From: Hyaloraphidium curvatum SAG 235-1
Taxonomy: Eukaryota; Fungi; Monoblepharomycota
Assembly: GCA_025558095.1 (NCBI GenBank)
Contig: JAIVFI010000035.1
Coordinates: 310,001 to 374,000, forward strand
DNA length: 64,000 bases
Reading direction: 5' to 3'
Of this stretch, positions 49,216 to 58,691 are shown in pieces; position 1 is the first letter of the stretch; each line of letters begins with the position of its first letter. The position numbers and the translations under genes are program-made. The notes under the pieces are model-generated. The model ran no database searches. It was not told the origin of the DNA and saw nothing but the letters and a program-made list of their open reading frames with translations.

Positions 49216-50122
49216 TCAGTCATCGTCCTCGAAGGCGTCGGCCCCGTCTGCCGGCGTATCCGGCATGTTGCGCGCCGCCGTCGCGAACATTTTGATGATG
49301 CCCGAGACCTGCGGCGGCAGGTGAGGGGATAGAACGATTCGGCAGCGCGGTCAGCCCACCTCGATGTTCCTCGCGAGGTCGCTCGGCGTCCGCCCCTCCG
49401 CGTTCCGCGTCGTCAGCAGATTCAGCAGCGCATCCTTGCTCTGCTTCGCCGCCGCGTGCTCCAGCAGCAGCTCCGCGCACTTCGCCGAGCCGCCCCACGC
49501 GGCCGAGTGCAGCGGCGTGTCCCCCAGCTTGTTCTGCTGGTCCAGCACGGGGTCCTTGGCCAGCAGCATCGACACGCATTCTGCGTGGCCGGCGCGGCAG
49601 GCCCAGTGCAGGGGGACGTTGCTCGCCGAGTCCAGCTCGTTCACCGAGGCGCCGGCGGCGAGCAAATCGGCGAGGAAGGCGGTGTTGCCGCGCTTGGCGG
49701 CCTCGTGGACGGGGAAGTCGATCCGCTGGGTGTTGTCCCCCACGTACTGCGGGTTCAGGGGGCAAGACAGATCGGGTTGCCGGGTGCAGGGCACGAGACA
49801 GGTCGGGTTGCCGGGGTGGGGACGCGTCAGATGGGTTCCGGGGTCTGCGGCGTCGCGCGGGCCCACGTTTGCCGGCACCAGGCCCTTCCTCTCCCCAATC
49901 TGGCAGAGCCACCAGTCGTCGCTCTCCTTGCTCAGCACGCTGCGATGGCCGTGAGGCGCGTCCTCCGGGGCCGGCGGCGGAGGCCCACGTGATCACCTCC
50001 CCGGCGGAGAAGGAGAGCATTCGCTCATCGGTGGGCTCGTAGTCGTACATCGCGACCACGGACATGAGCGACGGCCGCCGCACTGGCCGCCGCGGCGGCG
50101 GGGGTCTCTTCGCGTCGGCCAT
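49216..50122 (-). CDS. OSTF1: osteoclast-stimulating factor 1 homolog (SH3 + ankyrin repeats)
   Basis: PPPP start; SH3 domain (AMYDYEP..LSF..G..DWW..GLVPAN|YV); PVHEAAKRGN, PLHWACRAGH, NKLGDTPLHSAAWGG; acidic end. Confidence 0.88.
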
Positions 50123-50183
50123 CGCACTCAGCGGAGCTGTGGGCGGGCAAGGGGTTTCCCAGAGTAGGACCGGGACAGAGTAG

Positions 50184-51180
50184 TTTCACACACAGCGGGA
50201 CGCGGTTCGGCTCAAGCAGACCGGCAAGCTTGGCCCGGACGAGATTGCTGCTGTACTCGCAATTCACCGAACGACGTATTTCCGTTGGATCCGCCGATGT
50301 GGGGCTCAGACCGTTCCGGACCATCCCCGCAAGGCCTTCCGCAAGGTGTCCGACGAAATGGTCCGGCACGTAGTTGACGAGGCCAAAGCTCGCGTCCGCG
50401 TGACGCAAAGGGAGCTCGCTGCTGACCTGGCGGAAAAGTTTGGCGTTTTGGTGTCGCAGCAGCATATCTCGCGGCTGCTGAAGGCCAACAGGGTCACGAG
50501 GAAGAAGCTCACCATTAAGAGCGCCGAAGCCCTGAAACAACCCGAGCGGCACCGCATGTTCCACGAGAGGGTCACTTCCTTTGATTTGGGGCGCCTAGGT
50601 GCCTTGGACGAGTCCTCATTCCAACTCAACGATCCGGGGCGCTTCGGCTACTCGGAGAAGGGGACTCCCGCCGTCGTATACCTGCCAGGGAACCGGGGCC
50701 CCAAGGTGACCCTTTGCCTCGCCATCTCACCCACTTCGCGACCCGGTAATCACACTGGAAACGTGATCTCGTACCAGATCTACAGCGGCAACATGAACAC
50801 CGAGAGGTTCTGTGCTTTTCTCAAGACTATTCGCGCCGGGGCTTGTGGGTCCGAGTCCCTGGGCGTTATCCTGGACAATGCGGGTTTCCACGGCTCTCCT
50901 CTGCGGGCAAGGAAGACCACGGACGGCACGGCAATAATAAAGAACCTCTCGGGCAAGTCGTTCCTTGCGGTCCAGGCCGTAGCAAAGGCCAACAATCTGA
51001 GCCTCATCTACCTGCGACCGAGATCGCCGGAATTTAACCCGACCGAGTACGTGTTTGCCACGATCAAGAACCTCGTGAGGCGGGACTGCCCCAGGACGGT
51101 GCCGGATCTCGTCCGGTCCATCGAGAGGGCCATTCAAATCGTCGGCCACGGCGATCTGATGGCGACGTTCCGGCACTGCT
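50184..51180 (+). CDS. IS630/Tc1-mariner DDE transposase domain (N-terminal part of a long ORF)
   Basis: HTH EIAAVLAIHRTTYFRWIRR; second HTH TQRELAADLAEKFGVLVSQQHISRLLK; catalytic LDESSF (D 50607), ILDNAGFH (D 50874), SPEFNPTEYVF (E 51045); ends TFRHC with no stop codon. Confidence 0.9.
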
Positions 51181-53370
51181 TGAAGCTAAGCGAGGCTGAG
51201 TTTGTGCGCATCGCGGAATCCGCGTCCGCCGGCAAATGTGTGGCGCGGAAGGTCACACTACAAGGTCAGATCTCTGCCTTTGCTTCTCCGGCTCCTCAGA
51301 CGTGCCCTTCCGCGATGGAGGGCGCAGCAGCGACCCAGACCGAAGCAAACGCGGCCGAGCGGCTCGCTGAAGAGGTGGACTGCCATGACGGTTGCGCATC
51401 GGGCATGCAGACCGCGCTGACTCACGACAACGCCCACTCCGAGCAGGCTCGCAACCTCGGCGTCGCCCACATCAACCCGCACCAAAAGCACACTTTGCTG
51501 ACCCTGAGGGAAGTTCTCCACGTCGATGGTTCGGCGAGGGAATTCTTTGGGCCGTGGAACGACTTCACGGACTCCGCTCAAAGGACCGCGGGCTTCGACG
51601 CTGCGGACGTCCTCGGGGGCCTCTCCAACCTCGGTGAAGCTCCTTTTGAGTTCATCTGTCAGCGGGTGGCATCGGGTCGGGGGTACAAGCTGGAGCGCGA
51701 GCTTTTCGTCGCGCGCCTCCGGAACATCGTCGCCCGGCGGCGCCGGGTCGCCCCCAGTCTGATCGGACCAGACGCACCGGCACCTCCCTTTTTCCGCCCC
51801 GCGGACGATGGCGCGGATCTGGGACCGCCGTCAGCCCCCGACGTCTCCATCTCCCAGCTGGATAACCTCGCCCGCTATGCCGACGTCCCACCGGAACTTA
51901 ACGTCTCGTTCAAGAAAGCCAGCCGCGCCGCGTTGAAACAGCTGTTTCCGCTCTCAGCCCTTGCAAACGACACCGTGCTGGACGAGAGGTTCGCCATCCT
52001 CCTATCGGGCCTTGTACGAAACGGTCGTGGACCAGAATGGCTACGTGCGCTCGCTGTTTCTCTCTGGGGACAGCTCGGCCCGGCCGGGAGGGCACGCATG
52101 GACAGCTTCGAAACATCCGAGACAGCACGTCGTGCTCTGCATTATGTTCACCAGCCCATTTCGAAGGTCTGTCGGTTGGAGTACCTCGAACGCGCGGCTT
52201 CGACCGAGTCTTTGCCAAGGAACCTTAGGCAGATACTGGAGGAAGCGTGCCGCACGCTGAAGGACCAGCAGGGCCGCTCGCTTTTTGATGCGTCGCCCGG
52301 CCTGGAGTACTTCCTTGCTTCGCTCTCCCTCCCGCAGCGATGCAAGATAGTCATGGCGGCGCGTTTGCCGGATAGTGTGGCGAGTCGCAATGCGGAAGGG
52401 CGCAAGAGATTCTTCGATTGGGCGGTGTGGAACCCGATGGCGGCCAACGAGGAGGCCCTCGCCATCGAGAATCCGGGTTCCGTTCCCGTGCTGGTGTGCA
52501 ATCTCCTGTCGAGCAGCCCCGCAATCCCAAACTGATTTTTGCCCCGGCAGCTGCTTTCGTTCCCGGGCCTTTTCCAGATGAGCCCGGGCGTACCTGGACT
52601 GGATGCAGAGGGCGATAAGCTGCTGGCAACCCTGTTCCTGAAGGCGGAGCAGCTCGGGTGGGAACACTCTTCCATGGTGACGCTGCGGCTGCTGGAGTCG
52701 GGGCCCAAGATGCGCGATTTTACCCTGGACTTGTGCGGTATGCCCGCGCTGGTGCGCGGTAGCAACCCCGAAGCACGGCAGGAGGCCGCGCGCACCGCGC
52801 TCGACGCCAAGCTCCACTTCCTCGCGGAATCCGTTGGACTGCTGGACTTCGGCCGTATCCAGAAGCGGGATTGTCCGCTCTGTTCCTTCAGTGTGCAGGT
52901 GGAAGGCGAAGTCCCGGCGAAGGCTGGGCGGCGGCGCAAGGTCGCGGCGTCGGGGATGGTGGCTGACGGAGCTGCGCGGGAGCGTGTCTATGACGCCGAG
53001 CTTCGGCTCCTCCACCACGTCAAGGGTGCGCACCTCACCTGCAGAGCGTGCCCGGGGAAGGGACATCAGTTCGACCTCGAGAGTGAGTTCCGGCAGCATG
53101 TCGAGGAGAACCACCGTGGGGCGTGAGTTGCACCGCGCTTTCCATGCATGCCTGGGACCGATGCGAAGCTGACCGCCGCCGCGGACAGTTTGGTCGCCCC
53201 AAGGAATCTCACCACGTCGTTCGGCCAGTTCATTGCCAACGCACACTACATTGTCCCGTTCGCGTCGACAAACCTCAAAGCCAACATTCCTACGGGCCTC
53301 GGCGGCTCGTCCTGCCCTTTCTGTTTCGCCGGTGGCGGGAGGCACCGGCAGGAGTGCTCTCCGAAGCGGC
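51181..53370 (+). CDS. uncharacterised cargo/linker region with zinc-finger motifs, in frame with both transposase and Fanzor
   Basis: Open frame across introns 52494-52550 and 53123-53188; CPLC...H, CRAC..F....F.QH...NH (C2H2-like) and CPFC...H...C motifs. Confidence 0.6.
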
Positions 53371-56300
53371 GGTGGGTCGCGCTCAACGGCTTCCTCGCAC
53401 TTGGCGACCCCCAGCACGAGCGATACAAGACGATGACGGAGCTGGCCGTCGAGTGGTTCCCGGCGGCCGAGGTGTGCCACCCATGGGCGCGGGGCCCGTA
53501 CGAGCAAGTCGGGCCCCTCATCACCAAGGCCTGCACCCTCGCCGCCATCTTGTTCAAGATCATCTGGACCAAGATCTTGTTGCAGATCCACAACAAAGAG
53601 CTCCCGGACCAAGACGGATCCGTCACGCAGGACATGCTCGCCAGCTTTCCCCCGTCTTACGTCGCAAAGATTGCCATCCACGCCGTGCTTGGTGCCGGCC
53701 AGATGTCCGCCGCTGTTGGAACCCGCCGCGCGGGAAAGCAGAAGTCGGCCGGGCTCGGTGCTGGGGCGAGATACTCGGGCCATTCGGGTGCGCCAGGAGT
53801 GGAGCAGCTTGTGGACGGCGGTCCGGACCTCGGAGCCAACGACGACGATCGAGACGAGGTGCTCGAGGACGTTGACTTCGAGGACGATGACGACGCGATG
53901 GCCGAGGACCAGGCCGGCGCCAAGATCTTGGCCGACTTCTTGCACGGCGAGCTGGATCAGATTGAGGACGAGGACTTGGTTACGGCTGAGGACACCCCCG
54001 ATCTCTCGCAGGTTGCTGATCAGGGCGCACCGTCCGTTCTCACCGTCGCGGAGCACAACGCAGCGGCAAAGCTTGTCCGCAAGGCGGCCGTTGCTGCGTT
54101 TGCAGAGGCGCGGGAACTTGTGGGCGAGACGTACGAAAAGCTCAGGCCGCTTTTCGTGCAGGGACCTTTGCTCCGCTATGCCGAGCAGGTCGCTTTCAAC
54201 CGAGCTCGAAGCGTGCCGCAGCGGCTGCTGACTGCGCTCAAGGTTCTCATCCGTCGCTTCCTACGCGGGGAGGTGAACGCGGGCGTCGGCCGGAGGCGGA
54301 TTGGCCCAATCCTCAGCTACGCTCTGGCAAAGCTCGGATATGGGGACGACGACTTCTCCAATTTCCCGTTCGAAAGCGCATTTGGCTGTGGTCTTGCCGA
54401 GGCCACGGAGCTCAGGGTCGGGCTGGGGAGGCTTTTCCGGCCGTTCAGAGGCTTGCAGCTGAACCGGATCGTTGACCTCCGGGATTCAAAACAGAAGCCG
54501 CCGGTGCCGGCAACCGTTTCGCAGCGGAGGGTTATCGCTCGGGTCCTGCAGGACAAGCAGGCGGGCAACCCCGTGGCGGCCGCGGTGCGAACCGTGAACC
54601 TGCCGAAGGGCAAGCCGCGCGGAAAGGTCGACGCGGAAACGGAGGCGGTGCGCAGCTACCTCCAGAACATTTGGGAGACGCTGCCGCGGGCCTCACCTGC
54701 GGAGAAGGCTGACTTGCGAAAGGTGGAGCTGCAGGAGCTGAGGGACTGGGTGGTTGCAAACCGTCTACAGCTTCGGAGCATCCCCTTCCGCTACCCGGCC
54801 GTGACCACGGCAACGATTCGGTCGACAGAGCAGAAACCCAAGTTCTGGGTCCCCGAGCACGCCGAGGACATGAACGAGGCGGCGGCGGCGGCATTGGTGG
54901 GGCAGAACCGGCCCCACTGGGAAAGCGAGAAGCTTCTGGTGGCGCGGATGAGCGAGTATGACCTCGACAAGTGTCGTTCATCCACGAACCCCGCGGACGA
55001 AGCCTTCGGCTTCCAGATGTGCTTCATCGCCCTGCACGAGCTCGAAAAGCAGGACGAGGCGCTGAAGAAGAGGGCCGCGTCCGCGGCTGCTGCACTGCCG
55101 GAACCTGGAACGGCGCGGAGGACGAGCACCGCCAGGGACCCCGATTCAACCCCAACTTTCCCAACCATTTCAACTGCTCCGGTCAAGGACAGGGAGGCTT
55201 CGAACAAGACCAGGAGGGCCCGCAACACGTGGCGGCCGCACCGCGTCGAGAAGCGGCATTACAGCAAGAATGGCTCCCCGAAGCGATGGCACGGGTTCGT
55301 CGTGAGCTTCCGTAAGCGCCGACCGCAGCCGGGGCCCGAGGGACTCGCCAAGAAGGAGACCATGGAGACGAAGCGGCGGGAGCGCAAGGCGGCCGCCGCC
55401 GCCGCGATGGCGGGGCTTGGCGCCGCCCAGACCGGCAAGGAAAAGGCAGCCTCGTGGGCGCGGCGGAAGCTTCGGGCTGCGGTCGCCGAAATCAGCTTGT
55501 CCCCCGTGACCGTCTACATCTCGGCCTCGGATCTGCCCGAGTTTTTGTCCAAGCTGGGCGTGGAGGTCGCGCCTGGCATCGACACCTCGCGCGTTGACTC
55601 GGACTACCTATTCGGCCACCTGCTCAACGGCGGCAACCAACTCGTCAACGAGGACCGGCTCTTCCGCCTCCGTCAGCAGGGCAAAGTCTCGGCAAGGGGC
55701 CATGCCGCCGCCACGCAGCCCATCTATCGTCGCACCGCGGACGTTCTGAGGTACTCCGGCGTCCGGGGCATCTATCATTGCGGCAGCACCCTGGGCATTC
55801 TTAACGAAGAAGTCTCCTTCGTGGAAAAGGTCTCGTTCCAGCAGTCGCAGCAGCAGGAGCGGCAAAACACGACACAGGACGTCGAGCCGCCAAAGCGCGC
55901 AGCGCATTCGCCAGCAGCCGCGCCGGCTCCTCCTGTTCAAACTCGGCCCACCGTCTCCGTTCCCGCCGCAGCTCATGTGCCCGCCGGTCTTGCTGCTTTC
56001 GAAGTGGATGTTTCGTTCCCTCGCGATGTTCCGATGGATCCCTACCCGCCGCTCTACACCGGTCCATGGCTGCCAAACGGCGATCCGGACCCGCCGTGCG
56101 ACATGGCTGTCTTCGATGGTGGGCATTTTGCTCAGTGACGCACGGGTTCGGAGGCTGATCGGATCCTCACTTTTCCAGGCCAGAATCGGATTTGGCATGG
56201 GGGCATGGTCTACTACCTGCAGGCGACGGCCCAAGGGGACGAATCGGTCCCGATGGATTGGGAGCCCTCTTATTGTGCCAGCAGCAACCTTAACTTCACC

Positions 56301-58550
56301 ACCATGCCTTCCGAGCCTCCGGCGGACTGCGGCATCCCCGCCGCGGTCCCGCCGGAACCCCCGCCCTTTTTCTCCTTCGTCGAACCACCAGCCTCGACTT
56401 CTCTCCCTGCCTCCATTCCCCCGGAACCGCCCCCGCATTGGGTGCACGACCCGTGCTCGTGCTGTCAAGATGCCGCCTGCAAGGCCGTGGACTGTGCGCC
56501 CAACGTGTTCGCGCCCCTGAGCTCGGGGCACAACGACCCTCCCTGCGCGACTGTCTCGCCCGGTGACTCGGTGCCCGAGACTTCTGTGCATCCATGCGCG
56601 GCCCTTCCTTTCCCCGACTTCTCGCCGCCACTTCCTTCCCCGTTCCTTTCTTGCTTCCCTCCCGAAGTCGTCGTTTGCGCGGTCGAACCGTCGCCGCCGA
56701 CGGTAACGGTCGAGGGCAAGTTCGCTGCCCCCGTACCTCCTCAGCTGGCCCCGACCCCGGTTCCGCTCCCGCCGCGTTCTGCCGAGCCGTTGCCGCGGCC
56801 CCCGGTCGACTTCAAGACTGGCATTCCCGTCTACTACCTCAGCCGCCCTGACCATGTGTCCGTGCTGGCACCCAATCTCCTGCACATGCCGACGCAGGCG
56901 GAAATGTTCGAGCGGGCCGAGCGCGGCGAGCCAGTGGAGGGCGGGGTCGTCGACGTGGATCCGAATCGCTGGTTTCTGGCTGTTGCCAACCGCCGCGTCG
57001 ACGTGCGGCTCGTTGCCAAGAGCCTGAACCCCGGGCCGAACGGACGCTACGACTTCGCCAACAGTCATCTGCCGGGGACAACGGAGCGCATCACCGTGAC
57101 CAATGCCGACGGCACCAAGTCGCACTACGTGCCGAAGCGGGCGAACCCGTCATAGGCCGACGGTTCCGTCAGCTTCGGGAGGATCGTCGGCTTCCACCTA
57201 GAGCACTCCTGCTCCGATACTAAGCGGATCGCAAGGTCTTTCGGTCCGTCGCCGCCTGCCGCTGGAGCGTGCAGACACCACCCGCTCTGGGAGCCCAAGA
57301 TCTCGGAGTTCAAGCCGCCGGCGCCCGATTCGCGCCCCAACGACGCTGCAAAGGCGGAGAAGCACGCTCGGCGCAACGTCGAACTGTTCCCGACCCCTGG
57401 CGGCTGCACGGACGAGTTTGGTGCCAAGCTGTGGGGCGAGGTCGCTGGTGCCGGCCGTGCGGGGACCCCGGCGCTGCCGGAGCTCATCCTCGGTGTTCCG
57501 GCCAAGCTCGACCGCCGCCTGTGCGGCTACGACAAGGCGGCCGCGCGTCTGAATGCCACCAAGCGGACCACCATGCTGGACGTCAACGATTGCGAGGGCA
57601 ACCCTGTGCAGAAGTCTCTCCACGATTTCGAGCGCGACCTGCCCTCTCAACGCACAACGAACAGTGCAGCCTTCTCGGACTACACGAGGGCGCTGCTGCC
57701 ACAACTCGACCGCATCCTGGACGTCTACTGTTCCGGAGAACGGAGGTGGGCAAGCCAATCCCTGTGGCAACGACTTCGCTCACGCATCCTGCAGCCTGGA
57801 TCGTGTGCGCACGATTCGCCGGCGCCGCGAGGTCCTCAGCTGGATCTGTCGCGACATGTGTCGCAACCCGTATTCGGGCAAGTACGATCCACAGACGACC
57901 ATCGCATACGGCGCCGCGCGATTCGGCCATGCGAGCAAGGGCGGCCCGGCCTCCCGGATCGTTCGCTTCAGGGCGGAGCTGGCCAAGGCCGGGATCATGG
58001 TCTTGGTCAACGAGTACCTCACGTCCCAAATGTGCAGCTGGTGCGGCAGCCGCCGTGATCATCCGACTCGCCTGACGTCCTTTCCAGCTGCAAGACCACC
58101 TATGTCGTCGGAATCCGGAACCCCGGCTCCAAGGGCGAGGTGCGCGGGGTGAAATACTGTCCCCTCTGCCGCCGCTTCTGGATGCGCGACGTGAACAGTG
58201 TGCACTCCATGGAGCACCTCTTCTGGTTCGGCCTCATCACCGGAGGGGAGCGCCCCTGGCCGTTCAGGCCGGACACCAGGAAGCCGAAGCCGCAGCCCAA
58301 GCTCCGAGCTGGGACTGGTGCAGCGCCGCGCAAGTCCGCGGGTGAGCGCGCTCGCATTCGCGACGGTCATCCCGAGCGTCATCCCGAGCTGATCCGGGAG
58401 CTCCAGGTGCCGCCACAGGCCGCAAGCGTACGGCCGCAAGCGCCGCGAATGGGTCGGTCAAGAAGCTCAAGCCGGCAAGCTGACCTGGCCGCGGAAACAG
58501 TTACAAGTTGGCGTGCCATGCACCGCGTGGGCGCCATTGCATTTGCTTGA
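53370..58550 (+). CDS. Fanzor1 (eukaryotic TnpB-like RNA-guided endonuclease), expanded and intron-containing; in-frame TAG at 57153
   Basis: Candidate RuvC-I VVDVDPN (56946-56966); LPSQRTTNSAAFSDYTRALLPQLDRILDVY; IAYGAARFGHASKG; VLVNEYLTSQMCSCC; VRGVKYCPLC; WMRDVN; GERPWPFRP. Introns at 56119-56178, 57746-57794 and 58041-58087. The 5' boundary is an estimate. Confidence 0.87.
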
Positions 58551-58660
58551 TCGAGGTGGAGTCCGTCAGGGACCGCCTTTTATTCGCAGGCTCGATGATG
58601 AACATTGCTGCTAGGCCGCAAAGGATTGCGGCACAGTGGGCACAGTAGCAGTTTCTGAGA
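58280..58660 (+). ncRNA. candidate omegaRNA (Fanzor guide scaffold) region
   Basis: Position 3' of the nuclease core, as expected for TnpB/Fanzor; hairpins GGCCG-8nt-CGGCC (58418-58435) and GCCGCAA-AGGA-TTGCGGC (58615-58632); short repeats. Extent is inferred. Confidence 0.4.
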
Positions 58661-58691
58661 GTGTCTAAGGCATCTGAGGCAGCTGGCCCGA

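Follow-up and report, generated by a model that had tools for sequence, protein, structure and literature searches.

An IS630-type transposase, zinc fingers and a Fanzor1-like nuclease in one spliced reading frame of a Hyaloraphidium transposon inserted at a fixed distance from host motifs

The window considered here is a 64,000-nucleotide stretch of the genome of the fungus Hyaloraphidium curvatum (contig JAIVFI010000035.1), in which a broken copy of an 8.6 kb IS630/Tc1-type transposon spans positions 50182-58666. We find that intact copies of this element hold a DDE transposase, three zinc fingers and a predicted RuvC nuclease in a single spliced reading frame, and that the element inserts in constant orientation, its left end facing, and lying 21-24 bp downstream of, a 10-11-bp motif that is specific to each of two families. 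A sequence-only reading of this stretch had proposed the fused frame, which is now backed by intact copies, splicing data and conservation in two other lineages. It had further suggested that the fusion couples guide-directed binding or cutting to transposition: a coupling to target choice is supported by the finding that insertions keep one orientation and lie a set distance from a motif particular to each family, while RNA guidance found no such support.

The element and its copies

A genome search recovered ten copies of the element (family 1), which are 99.7-99.9% identical, and seven of them contain a single open frame of 2,697 amino acids (aa), rather than the roughly 2,600 aa estimated earlier from the window. 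The intact frame encodes, in order, the DDE transposase, a linker, three zinc fingers, a WED-like segment and a RuvC domain with an intact D-E-D triad. Copy C15 is frameshifted by 1 nt, and copy C7b lacks 171 nt in frame. The copy in the window is dead: a net loss of 140 nt just inside the left end has taken the ATG with it, the right inverted repeat is short by 2 nt, and a TAG interrupts the frame at 57153. This TAG had been singled out as the sole unexplained break; it is real and is a mutation private to the window copy (TCC AAG to TCA TAG), with TCC AAG in all other copies and in the contigs of the public run X1 described below, so that read-through or editing need not be invoked. Family 1 has recently spread, and we read it as an autonomous cut-and-paste element that was recently active.

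The terminal inverted repeats are imperfect, 24 bp long and bipartite, with a GCTACT box at positions 19-24 of both ends in both families. Indels cluster just inside the left end of family-1 copies (L041, L042, L043 and L044, the last at window 50196-50200), measuring -7, -22, -140 and +1 nt and starting at +14 to +20, and three of them delete the inner GCTACT box; family 2 (L021-L025) has three left-end variants from +32 on. The cluster could reflect either a break hot spot or the survival of immobilised copies.

A single spliced reading frame

Four long open reading frames of the window lie in one frame, with in-frame stops at 52533, 53124, 56136 and 57153, the first three of which are intronic. 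Five introns of 57, 66, 60, 49 and 47 nt, all with GT..AG ends, are spliced exactly in run X1, whose contigs were compared over 52400-58300; these five precise joints identify X1 as RNA. The sequence-only reading had placed the first three breaks inside GT-AG introns and predicted two further introns at 57746-57794 and 58041-58087. The X1 joints bear out all five, including the 49- and 47-nt ones. The layout of the frame in the window is as follows:

50201-52493, plus strand: exon 1 (2,316 nt in intact copies), IS630 transposase and a 431-codon stop-free linker
50205-51200, plus strand: IS630/Tc1 transposase, helix-turn-helix and DDE domains (NF033545, 125 bits, cut-off 100; PF13358, E 5e-15)
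52494-52550, plus strand: intron 1, 57 nt, contains a TGA, spliced in X1, position and phase as in family 2
52551-53122, plus strand: exon 2, with a helical domain and, at 52872-53114, two zinc fingers of the C2H2 type
53123-53188, plus strand: intron 2, 66 nt, contains a TGA, spliced in X1
53189-56118, plus strand: exon 3, third zinc finger, acidic stretch, helical region and WED-like segment
56119-56178, plus strand: intron 3, 60 nt, contains a TGA, spliced in X1
56179-57745, plus strand: exon 4, proline-rich linker, RuvC-I Asp, large insertion and the copy-private TAG (57153-57155)
57746-57794, plus strand: intron 4, 49 nt, shifts the frame, spliced in X1, homologous introns also present in family 2, in L061 and in the lake element (see below)
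57795-58040, plus strand: exon 5, RuvC-II Glu (58012), which precedes the C4 zinc finger by six residues
58041-58087, plus strand: intron 5, 47 nt, splits the first CxxC, spliced in X1
58088-58550, plus strand: exon 6, remainder of the C4 finger, RuvC-III Asp (58188), basic tail and stop

The earlier observation that the transposase lacks a stop after its usual C-terminus also holds in intact copies, seven of the ten being open throughout, and no stop follows the DDE domain in any of three lineages. The 431 codons of linker after this domain would be free of stops by chance with a probability of 8e-6. Of the words sampled across the whole element, 84% occur in X1, which therefore holds most of exon 1, and a rule built on splice signals, which retrieves all five of the real introns, yields no candidate in 50201-52400. 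From this frame and its splicing we infer a full-length mRNA and protein, in which the transposase, the zinc fingers and the Fanzor1-like nuclease would form one polypeptide. The frameshifted C15 allele (window 53324) is likewise present in X1, so that broken copies are transcribed too.

Domains of the fused protein

Profile, database and fold searches were run exon by exon, the joined spliced protein being used in frame checks and BLAST. The element belongs with IS630/Tc1/mariner by its transposase family, its terminal inverted repeats and its insertion at TA. The catalytic residues D144, D233 and E290 correspond to window positions 50607, 50874 and 51045, and their spacing is D-x56-E rather than of the DD34E type, the second D and the E being set apart by an insertion of 22 aa.

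The C/C/H/H ligands of the two fingers of exon 2, an exon that gives weak Atlas matches to C2H2 families, are invariant in four lineages, as are those of a third, CxxC-H-C finger at 53313-53357. Exon 3 has no Pfam or NCBIfam match, and its WED-like segment (about 55473-55820) is named by motif resemblance, structural and profile searches having returned no match to it.

The RuvC triad is intact (D2200 at 56958, E2535 at 58012 and D2578 at 58188). Its RuvC-II Glu stands six residues before the C4 finger, which is the Fanzor arrangement and is kept in family 2, L060, L061 and the lake element. Relatives lacking the intron in the C4 finger score 36-39 bits with PF07282 (cut-off 26.3); the window's exons taken singly do not match this profile, their C4 domain being split by intron 5. 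The pattern D-X(125,275)-[TS]-[TS]-X-X-C4-X(5,50)-RD is departed from in its first spacer (337 and 324 aa), the order being kept with an insertion. Among named proteins, the one most closely related to the nuclease part is H. curvatum KAI9033139.1, and a PDB sequence search gave only weak TnpB/Cas12 matches (E 0.004 or worse). Judged by its sequence, then, the C-terminal part has a Fanzor signature, of the Fanzor1-like kind.

Related fused elements

A second family in the same genome comprises five copies of 8.66 kb, four of which contain one frame of 2,622 aa. Of its seven predicted introns, five share position and phase with those of family 1 and differ from them in length. Calculated per 100 aa, identity between the families is 58-68% over the transposase (65% for the transposases as a whole), 75% around RuvC-II and 22-45% in between, the linker after the DDE domain being 29-44% identical. 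A third fused element, from a lake metagenome, is 10.4 kb long and has the same domain order; in 15 of 17 full contigs it forms a single frame of about 3,163 aa, with GT-AG introns predicted at five places. Its intron model is supported by a polymorphic 8-nt indel inside predicted intron 3. The lake contigs come from one study and are possibly consensus mosaics, and we count them as one lineage. There are also two partial relatives, L061 and L066; pattern scans of viral and metagenome sequences found no close relative. On this evidence the fusion is conserved in at least two organisms.

Two more pairs of an IS630 transposase with a RuvC domain, about 8.5 kb apart, lie on the minus strand at C2:426757-435534 and C2:397656-406415. 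One lake contig (L065:1682-3721) has a linker exon with an apparent internal duplication of about 200 aa.

Insertion sites

The ends of the window copy and its target motif are these:

50149-50158, plus strand: host target motif AAGGGGTTTC (family consensus AAGGGRYTKC), at -33 to -24 from the insertion point
50181-50182, plus strand: left junction T^A, the T being host and the A the first element base
50183-50200, plus strand: left inverted repeat, outer 13 bp of 24, then a 5-nt filler in place of the deleted segment that contained the inner GCTACT box and the ATG
58644-58666, plus strand: right bipartite inverted repeat, with the last element base T at 58666 and host A at 58667

Target statistics were drawn from 15 insertion sites in this genome, ten of family 1 and five of family 2. 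The motif AAGGGRYTKC stands at -33 to -24 in eight of the ten family-1 sites, with T at -26 in all ten. None of 5,000 null sets came close (p<1/5000), leave-one-out scoring gave background fractions of at most 0.003 for the eight sites, and nothing was found at the mirror position. Family 2 has a different motif, CGCGTCGATCA, at -31 to -21 in all five sites; three share identical spacing (p<1/20,000), while in the other two it is shorter by 3 and 15 nt and T at -1 is absent. The two motifs do not cross-score. They are degenerate while the copies are 99.7% identical and are therefore host DNA, which rules them out as part of the element.

T occupies -1 at all family-1 sites and three of the five family-2 sites, and A occupies +1 at all fifteen. 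The left end reads TC instead of TA in six family-1 copies, which form one haplotype clade with seven co-inherited internal columns of single-nucleotide polymorphism, and the right end reads CA in all family-2 and lake copies. The inner end bases are thus inherited with the element, and this indirect test by inheritance fits insertion at T^A with no duplication of a target TA. In the empty-site test of the C15 copy the left flank proved unique in the genome, and an empty site could not separate duplication from none.

The short or palindromic target preference of IS630/Tc1/mariner elements is not seen here, the motif being asymmetric and distal. What families 1 and 2 do share with CRISPR-associated transposons (CASTs) is insertion at a fixed distance and in a fixed orientation from a recognised site.

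The two family-2 copies with shorter spacing (L023 and L024, their motif 15 and 3 nt closer and without T at -1) share a 9-nt left-end insertion; target DNA was lost at their left junction, possibly as a nuclease scar. Among the lake flanks, [TCG][GT]GGAC occurs at -31 in three and also in L066, which is only suggestive. Lake junctions are ragged. L072, L076 and L085 share one TA within a 28-nt repeat whose surroundings otherwise differ, and L076 has a 14-nt G-rich filler.

Search for a guide RNA

A candidate omegaRNA scaffold overlaps the end of the frame:

58501-58581, plus strand: segment conserved with family 2 outside the coding frame, with a 21-nt identical block, a hairpin and a T run

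This conserved block after the stop may, from its sequence, be an omegaRNA scaffold; it has no Rfam match and its folding energy is not unusual. A genome search detected no stand-alone omegaRNA loci, the exact 19-nt block occurring only in the 15 elements. When the right flanks of all copies were compared with the target sites, no match beyond chance was found and the only top matches were those of a self-palindrome; the last 450 nt of the elements matched targets no better than random DNA did. A target-adjacent motif (TAM) would lie immediately 5' of the element; in family 1, positions -2 to -20 show no conserved bases. Exon-wise profile searches found no TnsC or TniQ domain. Of what defines a CAST, a guide complementary to the target was not found in the flanks or the 3' end of the element, though one might still be encoded elsewhere in the genome, and a nuclease-dead effector and TnsC/TniQ adaptors are missing. 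The CAST-like RNA-guided targeting that had been suggested is not supported: no match between guide and target was found, and the RuvC triad is intact, unlike that of nuclease-dead CAST effectors. A hairpin at window 58616-58631 is similar to the family-1 motif, a likeness that may be due to chance; it lies in a 55-nt segment that family 2 lacks.

Genomic surroundings

Divergent genes flank the window copy. One, for an MscL-like channel (PF01741), begins 25 nt past the right end of the element, at window 58692, and a spliced minus-strand gene at 49220-50122 has a product that looks SH3/ankyrin-like from its translation. A third IS630 family, 48% identical and with open frames of 800-900 aa, is present at C5:421668-422648, C23:314207-315187 and C15:543645-545093, with no RuvC match nearby; the C15 family-1 copy lies 7 nt from a truncated member of it.

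Proposed mechanism and alternatives

We favour, with moderate confidence, a spliced fusion gene in which the C-terminal arm recognises the motif through direct contact between protein and DNA and serves to tether integration, while the Fanzor part cuts empty sites for homing. The arm would bind the asymmetric 10-11-bp motif through the three zinc fingers, the putative TAM-reading lobe of the Fanzor part, or both, and would hold the DDE domain so that insertion falls at T^A 21-24 bp downstream, left end towards the motif and with no duplication. As insertion makes no duplication, excision can recreate the exact empty site. The predicted-active RuvC domain, with an omegaRNA running off the right end into the flank, would then cut this empty site, and the element would be copied back by recombination, as known TnpB/Fanzor biology leads one to expect. 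Through the fusion, integration and cleavage sites would be set by a single module. Given an intact RuvC domain and footprint-free ends, the most economical role for the nuclease would be restorative homing, to which scarless excision is favourable (PMC13565253). By analogy, three fingers and a 10-bp site match the pattern of the engineered ISY100-Zif268 transposase discussed below.

Several observations weigh against this proposal. The insertion sites are few, two of the ten in family 1 have no motif, and the lake family shows no significant fixed-distance motif. The fingers are atypical and carry a long insert; AlphaFold models of exon 2 and the RuvC-I region are of low confidence (predicted local distance difference test scores of 51 and 58), and fold searches with both gave no informative match. 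No transcript was seen to run from transposase to RuvC, which the X1 contigs could not reveal, and no omegaRNA, cleavage or homing was observed.

An alternative that we consider unlikely, though the best of those weighed, is a single-protein eukaryotic analogue of CASTs, in which the Fanzor part with an element-encoded RNA reads a TAM and a short seed, which together make up the motif, and the tethered transposase inserts just beyond the R-loop. The Cas12/TnpB R-loop has a footprint of about 21-24 bp, much like the spacing seen here, and the orientation is fixed. A 10-11-bp motif exceeds the 4-5-nt TAMs of Fanzor1, the best in-element match to the family-1 motif lies in the hairpin at 58616-58631, 40 nt from the right end, and the conserved 3' block comes close to being the complement of the family-2 motif; the 3 and 15 nt lost between motif and element at two family-2 sites could also be read in this way. 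However, about one motif match like that of the hairpin is expected by chance in the element, and family 1, the sites of which have no family-2 motif, carries an identical copy of the block that resembles it. The chance-level matches of the targets to the right flanks of other copies and to the 3' 450 nt, and the intact RuvC triad, speak against it as well.

Slightly less probable is that the fusion is real and the target is chosen by the transposase domain alone or by a docked host DNA-binding protein, the Fanzor part being co-expressed homing cargo. The AGGGG in the family-1 motif and the CGCGT in the family-2 motif resemble the fungal stress-response element (STRE) and MluI cell-cycle box (MCB), respectively; the 22-aa insertion in the DDE domain and the position of the window copy between two divergent genes would suit such targeting. 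Yet transposases that are 65% identical go with unrelated motifs in families 1 and 2, the related ISY100 transposase recognises just a short palindrome, and a one-sided site 24-33 bp away would be hard for a DDE core to reach. We think it improbable that the open frame yields two products that act apart, by an internal promoter, a poly(A) site or proteolysis: the long low-complexity linkers could be cleaved and exon 1 lies outside the X1 splice comparison, but in three lineages the DDE domain is not followed by a stop, conservation of the linker is 29-44%, X1 holds most of exon 1 and exon 1 has no splice candidate.

Comparison with known systems and significance

Fanzor and TnpB are known to accompany mariner and IS630 transposases as genes of their own (PMC3627910, PMC10691335, PMC10530073). 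The nearest comparisons are the Fanzor1-carrying Tc1/mariner elements PGv-1 and PUl-1 (Bao and Jurka 2013, PMC3627910) and the IS630-TnpB branch DDE-6 (Altae-Tran 2023, PMC10691335). Like these, the present element has an IS630/mariner DDE domain upstream of a TnpB/Fanzor domain within terminal inverted repeats, a nuclease that ends near the right end and a rearranged RuvC-II Glu. Unlike these, which have two genes and, in mariner, TA duplications, it has one frame of 2,600-3,200 aa, no TA duplication, three extra zinc fingers and a distal target motif at a fixed distance.

The engineered ISY100-Zif268 Z-transposase inserts one-sidedly at TA, 6-17 bp from its site (Feng 2010, PMC2831304). It resembles the present element in its IS630 family, its C-terminal three-finger module, its one-sided TA insertion and its asymmetric 9-10-bp site. 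It is, however, artificial and has no nuclease, whereas the present element is natural, has a spacing of 21-24 bp and a fused RuvC domain, and may use its fingers in the same way.

Type V-K CASTs, Tn7 TnsD targeting and engineered TniQ-TldR fusions share oriented fixed-distance insertion and a TnpB-family effector linked to transposition. CAST and Tn7 systems are bacterial and use several proteins with TnsC/TniQ, a nuclease-dead effector and a defined guide; the present element, in contrast, is eukaryotic, with one predicted polypeptide, an intact triad and no guide found in its flanks or 3' end. In a study of TniQ-TldR fusions, dead TnpB and Fanzor2 fusions failed (10.1101/2025.08.27.672191). 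Spy transposons (PMC4122938) are also eukaryotic DDE elements with inverted repeats and no target duplication, but they are related to IS5/PIF, insert at AAA^TTT and carry no Fanzor. In sum, the element is IS630 by its transposase and ends, without TA duplication, and has the Fanzor signature, and a CAST status is not shown. The literature searched, which left out many subscription papers and Repbase, holds no report of a natural transposase-Fanzor fusion or of fixed-distance targeting by Fanzor/TnpB-mariner/IS630 elements.

With intact copies and two families that differ in their motifs, the idea that a TnpB/Fanzor protein chooses the insertion site of a eukaryotic transposon becomes testable. 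Even without RNA guidance, the element is a natural site-selective, oriented and duplication-free DDE integrase, which is the goal of engineered transposase fusions. It also offers a possible answer to how a DDE element profits from Fanzor homing, namely by leaving no footprint and by using one module for both target and TAM. If insertion were RNA-guided after all, changing the RNA would retarget it. With copies placed at a set distance from a short motif, the element is a natural candidate for targeted, and possibly programmable, DNA insertion in eukaryotes.

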